In this document: piece by piece, positions 27,997-36,797 of the stretch
Numbering within the stretch: position 1 is the stretch's first letter
Layout: each line of letters starts with the position of its first letter
Source of the DNA: Tetramitus jugosus
Lineage: Eukaryota; Protista; Heterolobosea
Direction: 5' to 3'
DNA length: 64,000 bases
Assembly: GCA_937625935.1 (NCBI GenBank)
Contig: OW569369.1
Span: forward strand, 124,001 to 188,000
Program-made: the position numbers and the translations under genes
Notes under the pieces: model-generated
Told to the model about the DNA's origin: nothing
What the model saw: the letters and a program-made list of their open reading frames with translations, nothing else
The model's database searches: none

Positions 27997-28326
27997 ATGG
28001 TCACTGGAGGCGGAAGAGGAAAAGGCGGTGGTAAGGGCGGTAAGGGTCTTGGTAAGGGTGCCAAGAGACACAAGAAGGTCCTTAGAGATAACATTCAAGG
28101 TATCACCAAGCCAGCAATCAGAAGATTGGCAAGAAGAGGTGGTGTCAAGAGAATTTCTGGTTTGATCTATGATGAATCCAGAACAGTCTTGAGAACTTTC
28201 TTGGAGAATGTTGTCAGAGATGCTGTGACTTACACTGAACACGCTAGAAGAAAGACTGTCACTGCTACTGATGTTGTCTACGCTTTGAAGAGACAAGGAA
28301 GAACTTTGTATGGTTTCGGAAACTAA
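27997..28326 (+). CDS. H4: Histone H4
   Basis: [26 protein letters not shown]...TLYGFG. Confidence 0.99.
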
Positions 28327-29830: not shown

Positions 29831-30048
29831 TTTATCTGATGGTGGTGGTTGTGATTGTTGGGGGTGTTGAGCCAGAAGCTTTTCGGTGGATGCAGTGTTT
29901 TGTTTCTCTGGAATTTTGCTTCTGGTGTTGATATTTCTGAGACGAATTTGCCGCCCTCTCACGAATTTGGACTGGGGAATCTTTCCGACTTGGAAAAATA
30001 CAATGGGAGAAAATCAATCACTAACTACTGTTCATTGAAAAGCTTTAA

Positions 30049-30063
30049 GGTGGCCGTCCACTG
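30049..30063 (+). repeat. Left TIR
   Basis: GGTGGCCGTCCACTG preceded by TTAA at 30045-30048. Confidence 0.9.
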
Positions 30064-30064
30064 A

Positions 30065-30097
30065 AGAAATCGTATAAATAGGAGAAATCGTATAAAT
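30065..30097 (+). repeat. Subterminal direct repeat AGAAATCGTATAAAT x2
   Basis: Identical copies at 30065-30079 and 30083-30097, immediately inside the left TIR. Confidence 0.85.
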
Positions 30098-30391
30098 TTA
30101 CACATCGGACAACAAGTCAAACAACGAGAAACACATCAACTCGCTTTCCTATTATAATGAATACTGCCTCATGGTTCTGTTGGTGTTGGTTGTGTCACAA
30201 ATTGTCACAGGAGACTGCGAAGGTGATGTGCCCGTGCACATTTCATTGTTGATGGATTCAGAAGAGGATATCTCTGTGATGTCCTCTGTTTCGTGAAGAC
30301 CTCGCATCAGTTTCTCAAGATCGTTTGTTTCTTCCTCAGTGTTGTTGCTGCTGTTGTTCTCAACTTCCCTTGGTGTTTGTGTTTTTTAAGG

Positions 30392-30475
30392 GCATATCGT
30401 GAAGCTGCAAAAGAAGGATTTATATCCGTTGCACGTGCAATCTATTCAAACGCTCTATCGGAATTCCCCACTAAA
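30392..30475 (+). pseudogene. Captured fragment resembling PRP6 HAT/TPR repeat
   Basis: VARAIYSNALSEFPTK resembles PRP6 CARAIYAYALQVFPSK (recalled from memory); short match. Confidence 0.5.
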
Positions 30476-30917
30476 GCCATACAACTTGATCATCTGAATC
30501 TTTGCCTCCCTCGTCTTCTCATCAGGTATATTCTTGACCCAACTACATCATTTGTCAACAACATCACATACACAATTATACTCAAAAACAACAAGTATGG
30601 GCAATTGCAGCTATATACATACTCTGGAACGAAAAATCTTGACTTCCTATCAATGTACTTTTGTGTCCGATTCACTAATCGTTCACTCATCAACTGTAAG
30701 CATTCTGATTTTTCAACCCACCACAGTGCATACACATCGGGCACTGTTGCATTCGACGATAACTTGACTTCACAATTGGCAGGCAACCCCGCAACCACCT
30801 TCTTCACACTACAATTAAAAAACATATACAAAACAATAGTTTAACTTTACAAAAACATTCTTACAAATTGTAATACACAAAACAAAAAATACATACGCCT
30901 TTAACAAATCATTCTGT

Positions 30918-31382
30918 TTATTGATTAACAACTCTCCACCCTCCAGGGACCAATTCAAATTGTTCCCATGAACATGCCAAGTAGAATCCCTTCCACTTCA
31001 CATAACCATACCAAGAACCATTTTGATACTTCCAATCCAGAACATCATCAATTTGATAGAACTGTCCATTGGAGGTGTAGTTTTGGTGAATGTGACAGTA
31101 CTGGGTTCCACGTTTCCTTTGCAATTTGCACGGTAAGCCTGACTTGCAAACGGCCAAACAGTATGAGTACAAATTGTCCATATAAGACCTTATTGTTGAT
31201 AGATTATTGACCATCGAAGATCGAAAATCCCGACACGTCAATACCAAATTCAACACATCTTCTACACCAAGGAACGAACCAACTAGATACACAAATAAAT
31301 CAATATGTATATCGGTTATTCTTACTTTTATGTTGGTTATGTCTTCTTTTGGCGCCTTTTCCTTGTTTTCCCATTTGTTCAT
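30918..31382 (-). CDS. F-box / C3H zinc motif / chromodomain protein (transposon cargo)
   Basis: IHIDLFVYLVGSFL..EDVLNLVLTCRDF (F-box-like); C-x9-C-x10-C-x2-H; YQIDDVLD.....GYVKWKGF....SWE (chromodomain). Confidence 0.72.
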   Translation of the reverse strand: MNKWENKEKAPKEDITNIKVRITDIHIDLFVYLVGSFLGVEDVLNLVLTCRDFRSSMVNNLSTIRSYMDNLYSYCLAVCKSGLPCKLQRKRGTQYCHIHQNYTSNGQFYQIDDVLDWKYQNGSWYGYVKWKGFYLACSWEQFELVPGGWRVVNQ

Positions 31383-31383
31383 T

Positions 31384-31655
31384 GATTTTTTTCATCAAAA
31401 AAACTTGCAAAAAACAGAAAACAAACACTCTGAAGGACATCGTGAGAGCGAGTGACCTGATGATGAGTATGAGTTTTCTGAAGTTTGTCAAATTCTGTCC
31501 TATTGATACCATTAGAGATTTTTTCATCAAAAAAAACTTGCAAAAGCACAGAAAACAAACACTCTGAAGGACATCGTGAGAGCGAGTGACCTGATGATGA
31601 GTGTGAGTTTTCTGACGTTTGTCAAATTCTGTCCTACTATTGATACCATTAGAGA
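31384..31655. repeat. Tandem duplication with a ~133-bp unit, two near-identical copies
   Basis: Copies start at 31384 and 31517 (GATTTTTT..CATCAAAAAAACTTGCAAAA...GATACCATTAGAGA). Confidence 0.95.
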
Positions 31656-31664
31656 GGTGTTGAA

Positions 31665-32300
31665 TTGTCCGATAACTTGAGTATTCAGATCTCATTGATG
31701 ACACTTGCTCTTCAAACATATCCTGATAACACTGACGATGTCAACAAGATTATTAATAACATTGCTAGTCAATTGAATAGCACTGCACTTGCTTCAGATG
31801 AAATTGTAGACATGTTGAAGCGATTGTTGTTGGTGCCACTCGAGTCATACAACAATGTGCTAACAGTTTTGAAGTTGGAGAAGTATGGTGATATTATTCA
31901 TTCTCTTGGATATGAACAGAGAAAGTTTATTGCACTGAGCATTGTGAGATGCGCACTTGACAATGGACACAAGATTTCAACATTTGAACAAGTGAACAAA
32001 CCGTTTGATTTGATTCGTCCACTGTTGAAGGATGAGGAAGACCAGACAACATTCTCACCTTCTGACGACTCACCAATAGCTGCAACATTGCTCGAAGATT
32101 TCGAAGAAGAACAGAACTTGATTGCCAGATTGGTTCATTTGTTTGACAATAGCGATTCTGATCAATTGTTTAAAGTTTTGGCCGCAGCCAGAAAGCACTT
32201 TGGTCAGGGTGGTGTCAAGAGAATTCAATACACATTGGTACCACTTGTATTCTCCTACTTGAAACTTGCTCAGAGAATCTACAATGCACACTGCGAATAG
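31665..32300 (+). pseudogene. VPS35: Captured internal fragment of VPS35 (retromer)
   Basis: LL.VPLESYNNVLTVLKL, EDFEEEQNLIARLVH, ARKHFGQGG.KRI.YTL.PLVF; both termini of the ~800-aa protein are missing. Confidence 0.85.
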
Positions 32301-32627
32301 ACACCTCTTGTCGACTCTCCATCTTTTTTGATTGATTTGGTTGTTGTTGTTGATGTTCGTTGTGCGACTTGTGTTTTTCGTTGTTGTTGTCGCGTTCAAG
32401 ATTGGATAGATAGGTGGATATATTATAAAAAAATACAATAAATGTTGTATCAGTTTCCTCTAAGCTGCGGAATTGGTGCAGTTGTAAAAATTTCCGTTGA
32501 GACTGTCTTTACAACGGCAACGGCCATCTACCTCGGTTTAAAAAGCGCTGTCTTTTTCGCTGTTTGATTCATCTCACACAACAAATACAACACAACAAAT
32601 ACACCACACAACAAATACAATAACATT

Positions 32628-34541
32628 ATGCCACGAGGCGTGCCTAAGGACGGTAAGAGAAAGAGAAAGAGAGAGACTGTCAAAAAGAATGAATACTCAT
32701 CACATTACGTGGTCAAGGTCGGTCTGAAGTCTCTGTTGTTGCATCATCCAACTCTGTTACCAATCATACAAACTCAAGCTCTGGAGATTACAAGGATTGC
32801 TCTTCGACTCACAAGATTTATAAACATTTTTGTTTTGAGGCACTTGGAGAACAATTGTGATATCCCTCTCTTGAATCAAGGATTTATTCAACGAATCGGT
32901 TCAGTGTTGTTTGGACGCAAGTCGAAGACAAGAGACGATAATGTCAACCTCATCAACGGGTCAGTCAACATGGATGACGTAATAATCAAGCTAAGGAAGA
33001 TTTGTGAGAAGTTATCCAAATCCATCAATTACGTTGCCAAGTCTCTCAATGTCAATATTTCTAACATGCTCAAGTTCACATTGGAACAAAGACTGAGAAA
33101 GTACTTGAGAGTGAGGATGGCTCAATTGCACAATGGTCAATCAATCCCCAGGTCTGAATACAGAAGAGTAGTAGAATACATCATCAGAAAGTTGACATTT
33201 GTCACTCCAGTTTATGATTTTGTCAAACTGCCTCCAAAAGAGTTGATAGAGACTATTCCTGTGTTGATCCAAGAGGTTCGAACATTTGTTGGTGCTGAAA
33301 CCGACGAAGTGGTTGATGAATCGTTTGTGAACAACAACACCAATAACATGCTGAAGTTTTACTGGCATGTTCAACAGTTTCTGATTGTCAATGGAACAAA
33401 ATCATTTGCATTGTTGCCCTTGTCCCACTTTAAATGTAGATGCATGGAGATAGGTACAACGGACCTGATAGACATGCTCCAACAGAAGAAGAAGGGAAAT
33501 GTACAAGTAATTGAACCCATTGAATTGAAGTATAATCTCAAGTGTTTGAATGTTGGAACAAAGAAGATTCAAATCGACTCAATCAGAACAGACGGTATTC
33601 AGGCCTCTGTTGTTCTCAGACATCAACTCGTTGGCATCCACAAGAACAATAAGGCAAAGGTATCCAAGGGCCAGAAAGAAGCAAAGAAGATGAAGAAAGA
33701 AGCAACTATTGTTGATCAAAATGCAGATTACTTGATTGGTATCGATCCTGGTATTGTCACATTGATGAGTTGTGCAGATTCAGATGGTAAAAAGTGGGAG
33801 TTCTCCAATAAGGCATACAGACGACTGTCTCATCATTCACAGAACGCCAAACGTTTGTTGAAATACAAAGCAAAATGGAACACGAAAACTGGAAAAGATT
33901 TAGATGAACTCCATAATTCGATCAAACAAGCCAGTGTATCGACAAGTGATCTGTTTATCGAACACATTGATTCTGTTTTGAAAGTCGAAGATGACTTGCT
34001 TGGTTTTTATTGCACTCCAAAGGTGAAGAGACTGAATTGGGACAGCTATATTATGAGAGACAAAACAATTGCTGGAGTAATGAATGATTTTCACAAAAGA
34101 GCAAATGGAAGAAAGATGGTCATTGGCATGGGGAATGCTGGTTTCAAAAATAGTTACAGAGGACATGCTTCAACGCCCAAGGGCAAGCTGTTGAAGAAAC
34201 TGAATGAACGATTTGAAGTGAAAATGATTGACGAATTCATGACCAGCCAAAAATGTTGTGCTTGCCATTCCCATTTGAAGCCAGTCAAGCACAAACGAAT
34301 GGACAAGAAAGGTGTATCGGCAATCTCTATTGTACGAGGAGTTAAGCAGTGTGCAACCACTAAATGTTTAGTGACTCACAACAGAGACATCAATGCGGCC
34401 AAGAACATGCTCCATCTACTGAGAACAGAAATGGATGGACAGTCACGTCCCGATGCCTTCAAGAGGAAGAAAAAGGTCGCAAAAGAATTAATCAAAATGG
34501 TGGAACACCTCCAAGGCTCACTCCATCAAGCTGCTATGTAA
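32628..34541 (+). CDS. Fanzor1 (eukaryotic TnpB-derived RNA-guided endonuclease), 637 aa
   Basis: SIRTDG motif, RuvC-I IGIDPG, RuvC-II IDEFMTSQKC, zinc finger (CCAC...CATTKC), RuvC-III NRDINAAKNM; NLS-like KRKRKR and KRKKK. Confidence 0.93.
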   Translation: MPRGVPKDGKRKRKRETVKKNEYSSHYVVKVGLKSLLLHHPTLLPIIQTQALEITRIALRLTRFINIFVLRHLENNCDIPLLNQGFIQRIGSVLFGRKSKTRDDNVNLINGSVNMDDVIIKLRKICEKLSKSINYVAKSLNVNISNMLKFTLEQRLRKYLRVRMAQLHNGQSIPRSEYRRVVEYIIRKLTFVTPVYDFVKLPPKELIETIPVLIQEVRTFVGAETDEVVDESFVNNNTNNMLKFYWHVQQFLIVNGTKSFALLPLSHFKCRCMEIGTTDLIDMLQQKKKGNVQVIEPIELKYNLKCLNVGTKKIQIDSIRTDGIQASVVLRHQLVGIHKNNKAKVSKGQKEAKKMKKEATIVDQNADYLIGIDPGIVTLMSCADSDGKKWEFSNKAYRRLSHHSQNAKRLLKYKAKWNTKTGKDLDELHNSIKQASVSTSDLFIEHIDSVLKVEDDLLGFYCTPKVKRLNWDSYIMRDKTIAGVMNDFHKRANGRKMVIGMGNAGFKNSYRGHASTPKGKLLKKLNERFEVKMIDEFMTSQKCCACHSHLKPVKHKRMDKKGVSAISIVRGVKQCATTKCLVTHNRDINAAKNMLHLLRTEMDGQSRPDAFKRKKKVAKELIKMVEHLQGSLHQAAM

Positions 34542-34650
34542 GTCCCGATTATGTAGGAGCGTTAAGGTGTCTTCTCGGGAAATCATAATTTTTTTATTAT
34601 GGTTTGATCGACAGTGGACCGCCACCTTAATGAGCTGAAGTTAAAAATCT
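34542..34650 (+). ncRNA. Putative Fanzor omega-RNA: scaffold ~34542-34630 plus flank-derived guide
   Basis: Stems 34543-48/34575-80 and 34580-89/34596-605; loop TTAAGGTG (34562-69) is complementary to CACCTTAA (34623-30); located between the Fanzor stop and the element's right end. Confidence 0.7.
34612..34626 (-). repeat. Right TIR
   Basis: Reverse complement GGTGGCGGTCCACTG, followed by TTAA at 34627-34630. Confidence 0.9.
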
Positions 34651-36797
34651 TCAAAGAACATGAGTAAAGTGTTTAGGTGGATGAGCGAAGCTTCCAGCCG
34701 ATCTTCCACTTTCTCTAAACGATAGATAAATGCTTGTTGTTCCTTGCTGAGATTGTTCAAGCTGGTCAAAAATCCACCACCAGTTGCGTTCACGGCGTCC
34801 TCTTGTTCCTTTGCCAGTCTACTTCTCAAGTTTCTGCATGTCTTGTACATGTTGTTGGTCAACTTTTCGTATACGAGGTCTAACTTGACATTCCATAAAT
34901 AAAAAGTTCTGGATGGAGCATGATCAGAATGCTTAGGCACTTCTTGAAGCTCCACTACTTCGTCTTGAAGCATCTTGTACAATAGAGTACGTGCTTCAGG
35001 CATAGGAATCATGGCAAATTCTGCAATCTGTTTTTGTTCCAACATTTTGTTCATTAACAACATTCTGAAGATTCTGCAACCGACTTGGCCGTGCTTTTGT
35101 TCTATGATACTCTCGGCGTATTGTTTCTTCAGCTTATCGACGATACCTGCTAGGTTGATGACATAGGATCCACCACCGGATTGAGAGCTCATTTTTTGCA
35201 AAATTCTCGTGTTATCTTGTGACATAATGTCCAGATATTTTTCAACATTACGCTGACTTGCTTGATATTCATCACCGGTCAACACAGCCTTAAAAATATC
35301 ATCAAAATGAACCACTGAAGATATTTGATCGTTCTTTGTCTTTTCGTATGGTGAAGTCAGATTGAGAATAGCACGAAAGATGGAAGCAGCAGTAGGATTG
35401 ATTCTTTCGGACACATACTTGGTAATGGCCTCATTTCTGAATGTTCTAATAAATTGATCAAAATTGACCATCCATAACACAGGATCTTCTCTCTTTGGCT
35501 GCTGCTGTTGTTGTTGTTGTTGTTGCTGCTGTTGAAGCTGTTGTTGTTGTAATTGTTGTTGTTGCTGTAATTGTTGAAGTGCTTGTTGTTGTAGTTGCAT
35601 CTGTAGTGCTTGTTGCTGGTGCTGTTGTAGCAACTCAGTTCCAGGCATCGGTATATTGAAGAAGAAGACATCGTCATCATTGCTTGATGATGCATGACCA
35701 TTCGTTGGTGGCATATTGGTCATCAATCCATTGTTTGGTTGCTGCAAGACGTTGACTACTACTTCGTCTTCATCATCGTCATCAACCAACATATTTCGTC
35801 TTCTTTTTCTCTTTTGGACATCCATTTCTGGCATGTCTTGTCCCGATGGACTCTTCCTCTTATTGTTTTTTCGTTTCTGTTCAAACTGTTGCATTTCAAT
35901 CATTTGTTGTTCCTTGAGTGTTTCCTTTAGCGTTTTATTGGTGGTCACAACTGTGGATTTGAGTTTTGATGCACTCTTGTTGAACGCTCCAGACTGAGTC
36001 TCCACATCTGAAATATATTTGACCACACGCTTCAAGAAACGATTTCTAACCATGGCATCAAACGCGTTTTGAACACTTCTCTTAAATCCATTCAAGACAG
36101 AGTTGTTGGCATTCATATCGTCCAATGACATTTCCTGAACATGAGTTGAAGAGTCACTCTGCAAATAGAGCTTCTGAGCAATCACATCCACAATTTGTTC
36201 GCTCGTGAGTCGACCATGCTCCAACAACTCTTCCATAATCAATTCACCGTTCGATCCAACTCGATCCTTGATCAATAGAATAAATTTTGCGCACTTCAAT
36301 CTCATTAACACCTCATCAATCATAATTTCATAGAAAAATGTAGTTTCTAGCGTGTTTTGTCTCGTGCTCGACTCTCCACTAGCAATGATTGCATCTTCTT
36401 GATCAAACAAGAGCGATGAACCACCTCCATTGACTCCAGCACCATTAGGCCTCTTCCACTTTTTGTTCTTCTCATTCATTTCTCGTTCCTTCTCGAATGA
36501 TAGCAGACCAACGTTTGATCTCGTTGAAAAATTGTCTGGATCCGATGCGTCCTTCTTGTCTCTCACCATTTGTTTCAATCTTCTCTCTTTTTCTTCCTTG
36601 TCGTAGAAGATGACCATGTTGTGCTGAATGAGCACCAATAGTGCGTTACGTACCTGTTGAAAGGTTAACTTTGTCTTTCGAATCAGTTCGACAAGTGTCA
36701 AAACGCCTTCCTTGAGCAGACACTCACCCACTTTCTCTACCAAGTCACCAAAGTGGTCATGTAGAATATTCATGGCCAATTTTACTCTGTTTGACAT
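34641..36797 (-). CDS. POLR3C: RNA polymerase III subunit RPC3/RPC82, with a polyQ insertion
   Basis: HFGDLVEKVG..LL, LLVLIQHN, W.VNFDQF, RIFRMLL....LEQKQI, LQEVPK......RTFYLW. Confidence 0.93.
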   Translation of the reverse strand: MSNRVKLAMNILHDHFGDLVEKVGECLLKEGVLTLVELIRKTKLTFQQVRNALLVLIQHNMVIFYDKEEKERRLKQMVRDKKDASDPDNFSTRSNVGLLSFEKEREMNEKNKKWKRPNGAGVNGGGSSLLFDQEDAIIASGESSTRQNTLETTFFYEIMIDEVLMRLKCAKFILLIKDRVGSNGELIMEELLEHGRLTSEQIVDVIAQKLYLQSDSSTHVQEMSLDDMNANNSVLNGFKRSVQNAFDAMVRNRFLKRVVKYISDVETQSGAFNKSASKLKSTVVTTNKTLKETLKEQQMIEMQQFEQKRKNNKRKSPSGQDMPEMDVQKRKRRRNMLVDDDDEDEVVVNVLQQPNNGLMTNMPPTNGHASSSNDDDVFFFNIPMPGTELLQQHQQQALQMQLQQQALQQLQQQQQLQQQQLQQQQQQQQQQQQPKREDPVLWMVNFDQFIRTFRNEAITKYVSERINPTAASIFRAILNLTSPYEKTKNDQISSVVHFDDIFKAVLTGDEYQASQRNVEKYLDIMSQDNTRILQKMSSQSGGGSYVINLAGIVDKLKKQYAESIIEQKHGQVGCRIFRMLLMNKMLEQKQIAEFAMIPMPEARTLLYKMLQDEVVELQEVPKHSDHAPSRTFYLWNVKLDLVYEKLTNNMYKTCRNLRSRLAKEQEDAVNATGGGFLTSLNNLSKEQQAFIYRLEKVEDRLEASLIHLNTLLMFFEDF

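Follow-up and report, generated by a model that had tools for sequence, protein, structure and literature searches.

A gene family with an F-box, a CCCH zinc knuckle and a chromodomain is, on a narrow balance of the evidence, a genuine and optional cargo of a TTAA-flanked, transposase-less subfamily of Fanzor transposons in the protist Tetramitus jugosus and its relatives, with a native protein that would work as an SCF adaptor. Fold and complex predictions indicate that the family probably encodes such an adaptor. The gene was studied in a 64,000-nucleotide stretch of contig OW569369.1 (positions 124,001 to 188,000), the whole of which is called the window here.

The gene and the element that carries it

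A first-pass annotation of the window had placed an open reading frame at 30918-31382, divergent from Fanzor. The frame is present, runs from ATG to stop on the minus strand and encodes 154 residues; Fanzor lies on the plus strand of the same repeated element. The features are as follows.

30045-34630, no strand assigned: whole transposon, 'variant A', delimited by inverted repeat, end sequences and genome copies
30918-31382, minus: F-box/zinc-finger/chromodomain open reading frame, 154 aa, ATG to stop, from the list of open reading frames and copy alignments
30930-31064, minus: chromodomain-like beta barrel, window residues 107-151, cage Y111, W130 and F133, C-terminal helix absent
31086-31160, minus: C-x9-C-x10-C-x2-H zinc knuckle, window C75, C85, C96 and H99, TRM13-CCCH or WRC-type spacing
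31167-31334, minus: F-box-like helical domain, window residues 17-72, equal to native residues 31-86
31329/31330, minus: site of a 29-bp deletion private to the window copy, from alignment with six other copies
31397-31636, minus: tandem duplication of the gene's upstream leader, two units, period 134
31651-32290, plus: captured internal piece of host Vps35 (Pfam 1.2e-42)
32628-34541, plus: Fanzor (TnpB-like) open reading frame, intact, 637 aa (Pfam Cas12f1-like_TNB 9e-10)

The element measures 4586 bp and is non-autonomous, the transposase being absent. Its 19-nt inverted ends (30045-30063 and 34612-34630) are 95% complementary and include the TTAA that flanks it on both sides. An end-to-end copy on contig 22 is 98% identical, and genome copies match window positions 30043-34630. 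Within these ends lie a mosaic left part, the F-box/chromodomain gene, the tandem duplication, the Vps35 fragment and Fanzor. In the left part (30150-30808), public-run contigs reveal pieces that extend into longer host transcripts. The Vps35 piece, situated between the F-box/chromodomain gene and Fanzor, corresponds to Pfam positions 330-526 of 726; its borders are set at 31651 and 32290 because host mRNA contigs continue there with unlike sequence. An Rfam scan of 30000-34700 gave no match. Elsewhere in the window, at 27997-28326, lies a histone H4 reading frame with an extended N-terminal tail rich in glycine and lysine.

Each unit of the duplicated leader holds one copy of a 28-nt motif (31430-31457 and 31564-31591), composed of GGTCACTCGC, four variable bases and ACGATGTCCTTCAG; a further occurrence is found at L058:332-359. 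The motif stands about 70-100 nt upstream of the start and is common to the window and to the contig of P0004, a relative with 48% identity, the flanks around it being otherwise unalignable between the two. All 26 matches to the motif in the Tetramitus jugosus genome fall in copies of the element. Its role could be that of a promoter or leader element, or it could form a separate RNA. Contigs from the RNA libraries give deep cover of this stretch.

The window copy is a deletion variant

Public-run contigs of other copies contain 22+7 additional letters at 31329/31330. Through the 29-bp deletion the native start codons lose their frame and a different ATG gains it, so that the product of the window copy opens with about 18 residues foreign to the native protein; the match to that protein is confined to residues 19-154, equal to native residues 33-168. 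In the other copies the frame extends upstream to M-K-K-I-N-E-Q-M-G-K-Q-G, giving a protein of 168 aa, or of 161 aa from the second methionine, which is the start in P0004 and in a near-identical public protein. The window copy is missing a basic stretch (R-R, 12 residues, K-R-K-V-R) that is conserved in relatives and that fits, by its pattern, a bipartite nuclear localisation signal. As a deletion variant without the native N-terminus, the window copy is probably impaired.

A 20-nt intron in the 29 additional bases of the other copies was considered and rejected, since the stretch codes in the native frame and is conserved in P0004. Four independent copies carry differing deletions (29, 12, 63 and 12 nt) inside the same approximately 40 bases, at window 31329/31330 and in loci L005, L006 and L019; the cluster covers native codons 20-32 and lies beside an ACCAAC-ACCAAC repeat. 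It is a deletion hot spot, slippage being one possible cause.

Domain architecture of the native protein

The F-box-like N-terminus proposed by the first-pass annotation is borne out by fold comparison and by a predicted complex with Skp1, the Pfam matches being sub-threshold. Pfam F-box-like (PF12937) scores 12-14 bits, below its cut-off of 24.3, and is matched in three of six family members (best E 0.0025); PF00646 reaches E 0.014 in one member. AF2 gave a pLDDT of 72 with a six-row family alignment and of 45 from the single sequence. With native residues 31-86 as the query, the best VIA-align matches are the F-boxes of Cdc4 (Z 5.4) and cyclin F (Z 5.0), and those of FBXL17, beta-TrCP, FBH1, Fbs2, FBXO31, Skp2 and Legionella AnkB are also found. 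More than 15 of the best 35 rows are F-boxes, many of them Skp1-bound, at modest Z values of at most 5.4. The top Foldseek matches are to Fbw7-Skp1. These comparisons agree in assigning a predicted three-helix F-box fold to residues 31-86.

The genome has one Skp1 gene, a 168-aa reading frame with both Pfam domains. Its product and native residues 28-92 were predicted to form a complex with a score of 0.69, the best of three controls reaching 0.02. Contact agreement among the runs was at least 91%, the pLDDT of the partner at least 64, and the interface fell at the C-terminal helices of Skp1. Solved complexes attain the mark used for this score in 51 of 78 cases, mismatched pairs in 2 of 108. 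The F-box region is thus predicted to fit the organism's own Skp1, with the qualification that the score may merely mirror likeness to, or memory of, solved Skp1-F-box complexes.

The C-x9-C-x10-C-x2-H motif described in the same annotation is found at C75, C85, C96 and H99, and two family alignments place its zinc ligands at positions that are invariant or conserved in full-length relatives. Pfam zf-TRM13_CCCH is matched in four of six family members at 18-19 bits (cut-off 20.9). Spacing is identical to that of the TRM13-type CCCH and plant WRC knuckles, and the Pfam match is near threshold; the protein differs in that the second half of the model alone is matched, and in being neither a methyltransferase nor a GRF factor. 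The motif recurs as repeats in weaker phmmer matches.

An equivalent zinc finger (45% over 29 aa, E 5e-7) is encoded by a host gene on contig 15. In this gene (C15:269472-270100; L055:1381-1977, minus strand) a C-x9-C-x10-C-x2-H knuckle is joined to a chromodomain by a long linker of low complexity, and an intron starting GTATGT interrupts the chromodomain; the comparison used the first exon alone and left out the joined model. The pairing of zinc finger and chromodomain may derive, distantly, from this gene.

The annotation had also named a chromodomain with all three aromatic-cage positions, which profile-profile and fold comparison both support. Pfam Chromo (PF00385) scores 11-13.1 bits, below its cut-off of 25.1. 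When the family profile was compared with the PDB, 20 of 25 weak matches were chromodomains, all in one register, and hhalign against eight chromodomains of the genome gave a probability of 84.7% (E 6.7e-6). Foldseek superposes the model of native residues 116-168 on more than 30 chromodomains, CBX, HP1 and MPP8 among them, with probability 0.85-0.98 and 0.9-1.3 Å over 34 residues. The Y/W/F cage aligns with HP1 Y24/W45/Y48, and relatives have Y or F, W, and F or H at these positions. The model predicts, on these grounds, a chromodomain core with three cage aromatics.

The C-terminal helix, which had been thought short or absent, is absent in the AF2 model: the C-terminus is formed by strands at 151-159 and 162-165, and the protein ends 12 residues past the W-E motif. 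The core resembles the chromodomains of HP1, CBX and MPP8 and of chromoviral and Polinton-like integrases in its beta-sheet (about 1 Å) and its Y/W/F cage, but differs from the HP1/CBX type in lacking the C-terminal helix and in having an additional conserved end strand, G-x-W-x-V. It is also fused to an F-box rather than to an integrase or chromoshadow domain. Atlas rows that pair rve with Chromo show that chromodomains recur in mobile elements. When the family signature W..WYG.V.WKGF was sought in the host chromodomains, none shared it. Two near-identical short chromodomain frames, one with stops, lie at C34:7151-7267 and C19:11115-11231 (L051 and L054); they look like another multi-copy chromodomain, possibly transposon-borne.

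Relatives of the gene

A word-based protein search, with a single protein and then with the family profile, returned near-identical proteins and the same few relatives only. Exhaustive phmmer searches gave two full-length relatives, P0004 (160 aa, 48% identity over residues 8-165) and P0007 (180 aa, 34% identity over residues 6-167), together with the 5'-truncated P0006 (46% identity) and the degenerate P0014. A viral contig collection scanned for relatives had none. In the family alignment the basic N-terminus, the F-box-like helices and C/C/C/H at x9/x10/x2 keep a constant order; the family signature is W..WYG.V.WKGF...WE.F.....G.W.V, and C/C/C/H and W/G/W/G are invariant.

The related species include the organism of assembly GCA_037189345.1 and the source of ERZ778017/8. 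P0006 and P0014 come from one NCBI assembly, in which the SNF2 gene is 78% identical to its Tetramitus jugosus orthologue, and the organism is thus a fairly close relative. Against these 78% for a host orthologue, identity in that organism is 46-48% for the F-box/chromodomain gene and 51% for Fanzor. Between the P0004 and P0006 genes dN/dS is 0.33 over 88 codons (Fisher p 0.01-0.04).

A second contig of the P0004 metagenome (2.5 kb, low coverage) carries the 3' end of the gene, with 170 bases in common and then unlike flanks. At a distance of 590 nt, on the opposite strand and in convergent orientation, it has a Fanzor fragment corresponding to residues 216-276 at 51% identity. The gene is therefore multi-copy in the source of P0004 as well, sometimes broken, and at least once beside Fanzor DNA; the contigs of the relatives measure 0.6-2.5 kb at low coverage, and Fanzor linkage outside the Tetramitus jugosus genome is seen on this one contig.

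Copies in the genome

The protein matches 19 loci in the genome, and all 19 adjoin Fanzor-element DNA; a search for copies outside Fanzor elements found none. The native frame is kept at two loci (contigs 22 and 3) and broken at the other 17. Variant A, in which the chromodomain part is present, accounts for 7 of the 19. Two of these are native, the window copy has the 29-bp deletion, one is without start codons, one has two stop codons, one has lost 63 nt internally, and one is cut at its 5' end and carries a stop.

Variant B is the most numerous subfamily (11 of 19 loci). Codons 1-104 are common to both variants, after which variant B breaks inside the zinc finger and its frame ends nine foreign residues later; its element termini also differ from those of variant A. 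Variant B elements have multiplied despite this cut. The remaining locus retains the first 18 codons only. In variant C, a 2.7-kb subfamily with perfect 13-nt inverted ends and with Fanzor present, there is no trace of the F-box/chromodomain gene. A Fanzor frame of 637-649 aa is open in at least 15 of 20 loci, with protein identities of 75-100%. The gene is dispensable in cis for the element.

Variants A and B agree at about 99% of positions in the 5' part of the gene, whereas their Fanzor genes are 87-88% identical in DNA, which implies recent exchange of the cargo block between element lineages by recombination. For the whole block, made up of the leader, the Vps35 fragment and the gene's 5' part, identity between subfamilies with differing termini is 95-99%. 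Copies within the genome show about eight non-synonymous and three synonymous differences, as expected without constraint; with identities of at least 99% among the copies, this comparison has very little power.

The main rival to a transposon gene family is a passenger gene: a complete host F-box/zinc-finger/chromodomain gene, picked up with its promoter by a cargo-collecting Fanzor element, useless to that element and decaying, with relatives elsewhere that are host genes. We think this unlikely on balance, and weigh it ahead of the other alternatives. The plain host fragments in the same element (Vps35 and the pieces at 30150-30808) are what such capture would leave, as known from Pack-MULE-like elements, and the contig 15 host gene pairs a like zinc finger with a chromodomain. 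Loss of the native frame at 17 of 19 loci with Fanzor retained also suits a passenger, as does a cargo block that is 99% identical across subfamilies whose Fanzor genes are 87-88% identical, a sign of recent spread by recombination. Against it stands the genome itself, in which no copy lies outside Fanzor elements. The related organism is also multi-copy, with truncated and frameshifted copies, one of them adjoining a Fanzor fragment, and the divergence of the gene there is Fanzor-like (46-51%) and unlike that of a host orthologue (78%). Unlike the other cargo, moreover, and unlike Pack-MULE-like captures, this cargo comprises an entire gene, which has a conserved upstream motif of its own and relatives in other species.

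The first-pass annotation had proposed a Fanzor accessory protein. In this explanation the product acts in physical association with Fanzor or with its guide RNA, and might, for instance, direct cleavage or homing towards chromatin that bears marks. The two genes form a divergent pair within one element, and one relative adjoins a Fanzor fragment in another organism. Co-retention fails nonetheless: 2 of 19 loci have the gene intact, variant B has it truncated and variant C lacks it, yet both of these subfamilies retain an intact Fanzor, as do at least 15 of 20 loci overall. In addition, the two genes stand 1.2 kb apart, with unrelated captured DNA between them, and the arrangement in the other organism is convergent rather than divergent. 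The copy census makes a direct partnership with Fanzor very improbable.

That the frame is a chance or chimeric product of captured host pieces encoding an incoherent protein, as the annotation had also allowed, is scarcely credible: the element is a mosaic, variant B breaks the frame in mid-finger and all Pfam matches are sub-threshold, but full-length relatives at 34-48% identity keep the domain order, the key residues and open frames, the folds become confident once relatives are aligned, and dN/dS is 0.33.

Presence in RNA-labelled data

Four RNA-labelled public runs were consulted, all as Logan contigs, which record presence and allow neither strand nor level to be read. Among soil metatranscriptome contigs are some with the leader and with the 5' part of the gene in its variant-B form (31113-31414). 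The chromodomain part (30942-31098) is in no contig of the four runs, so the chromodomain-bearing form is unassembled in those samples. Contigs from the RNA runs also cover the 3' end of Fanzor and the right end of the element (34239-34700), the expected place of the guide RNA. Elsewhere the Fanzor coding region is uncovered, which may stem from the likeness threshold of 90%; empty bins there are uninformative, as variant-B Fanzor, at 87-88% identity, falls below it. One soil metatranscriptome contig joins 31403 to 34507, running from the start region of the gene to the last approximately 120 bases of the element and skipping 3.1 kb; this miniature derivative retains both the leader and the end presumed to hold the guide RNA.

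Proposed function and comparison with known systems

Four parts make up the native protein (161-168 aa): an N-terminus that is basic and resembles a bipartite NLS, then an F-box, a CCCH zinc knuckle and an aromatic-cage chromodomain. In the mechanism that we consider most likely, it would enter the nucleus, where the F-box would dock onto Skp1/Cul1, and the zinc knuckle and chromodomain may direct the SCF ubiquitin ligase to methyl-lysine-marked chromatin or to a methylated protein. Recruitment of SCF could let the element escape or shape silencing. The obvious guess is anti-silencing, with SCF causing a chromatin factor to be removed. The full form of this idea, in which an RNA-guided-nuclease transposon has its own SCF adaptor that reads heterochromatin marks so that the host ligase removes a silencing component at the element, seems distinctly doubtful to us.

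The protein shares with the F-box receptors of SCF ligases (Skp2, Cdc4/Fbw7, cyclin F and FBXL) a three-helix F-box fold and, by prediction, Skp1 docking, and its C-terminal module likewise could select the substrate. It differs from these receptors, which use WD40, LRR or other modules, in having a CCCH knuckle and a chromodomain, in its size of 161-168 aa and in being borne by a transposon. An Atlas fold search returned TM values below 0.4 and no cluster built from F-box, knuckle and chromodomain.

Adaptors of this kind are known from other selfish agents. The polerovirus protein P0 is an F-box-like suppressor of RNA silencing, and F-box-like proteins also occur as nanovirus Clink, in giant viruses and in Legionella. 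As a comparison from general knowledge, these viral and injected proteins likewise serve a selfish agent as adaptors for hijacking the host SCF ligase. They differ from the present family in that sequence kinship with it is undetectable and in that the present carrier, a DNA transposon, also encodes an RNA-guided nuclease. The nearest clusters in an Atlas feature search were giant-virus F-box clusters, weakly matched at 0.76-0.78.

The annotation knew of no described Fanzor system with such a partner, and the literature bears this out as far as it was searched. A search for Fanzor joined with F-box or chromodomain found no link among the matches listed, and a partner with an F-box or a chromodomain goes unmentioned both in the founding survey of Fanzor and in the 2023 Fanzor paper. 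The 2023 paper left gene associations open.

Fanzor elements encode RNA-guided nucleases whose natural role is unclear, and no gene partner for them was found reported in the literature searched. Being optional and frequently lost, as the census shows, the present gene is not to be counted as Fanzor machinery. If the adaptor reading is true, the protein would stand beside P0, the viral F-box suppressor of silencing, as its counterpart at the level of chromatin. A conserved F-box/chromodomain protein carried by an element would show, in compact and natural form, how a transposon can hijack the ubiquitin system of its host where chromatin is marked, and would offer a handle on how protist transposons meet silencing.
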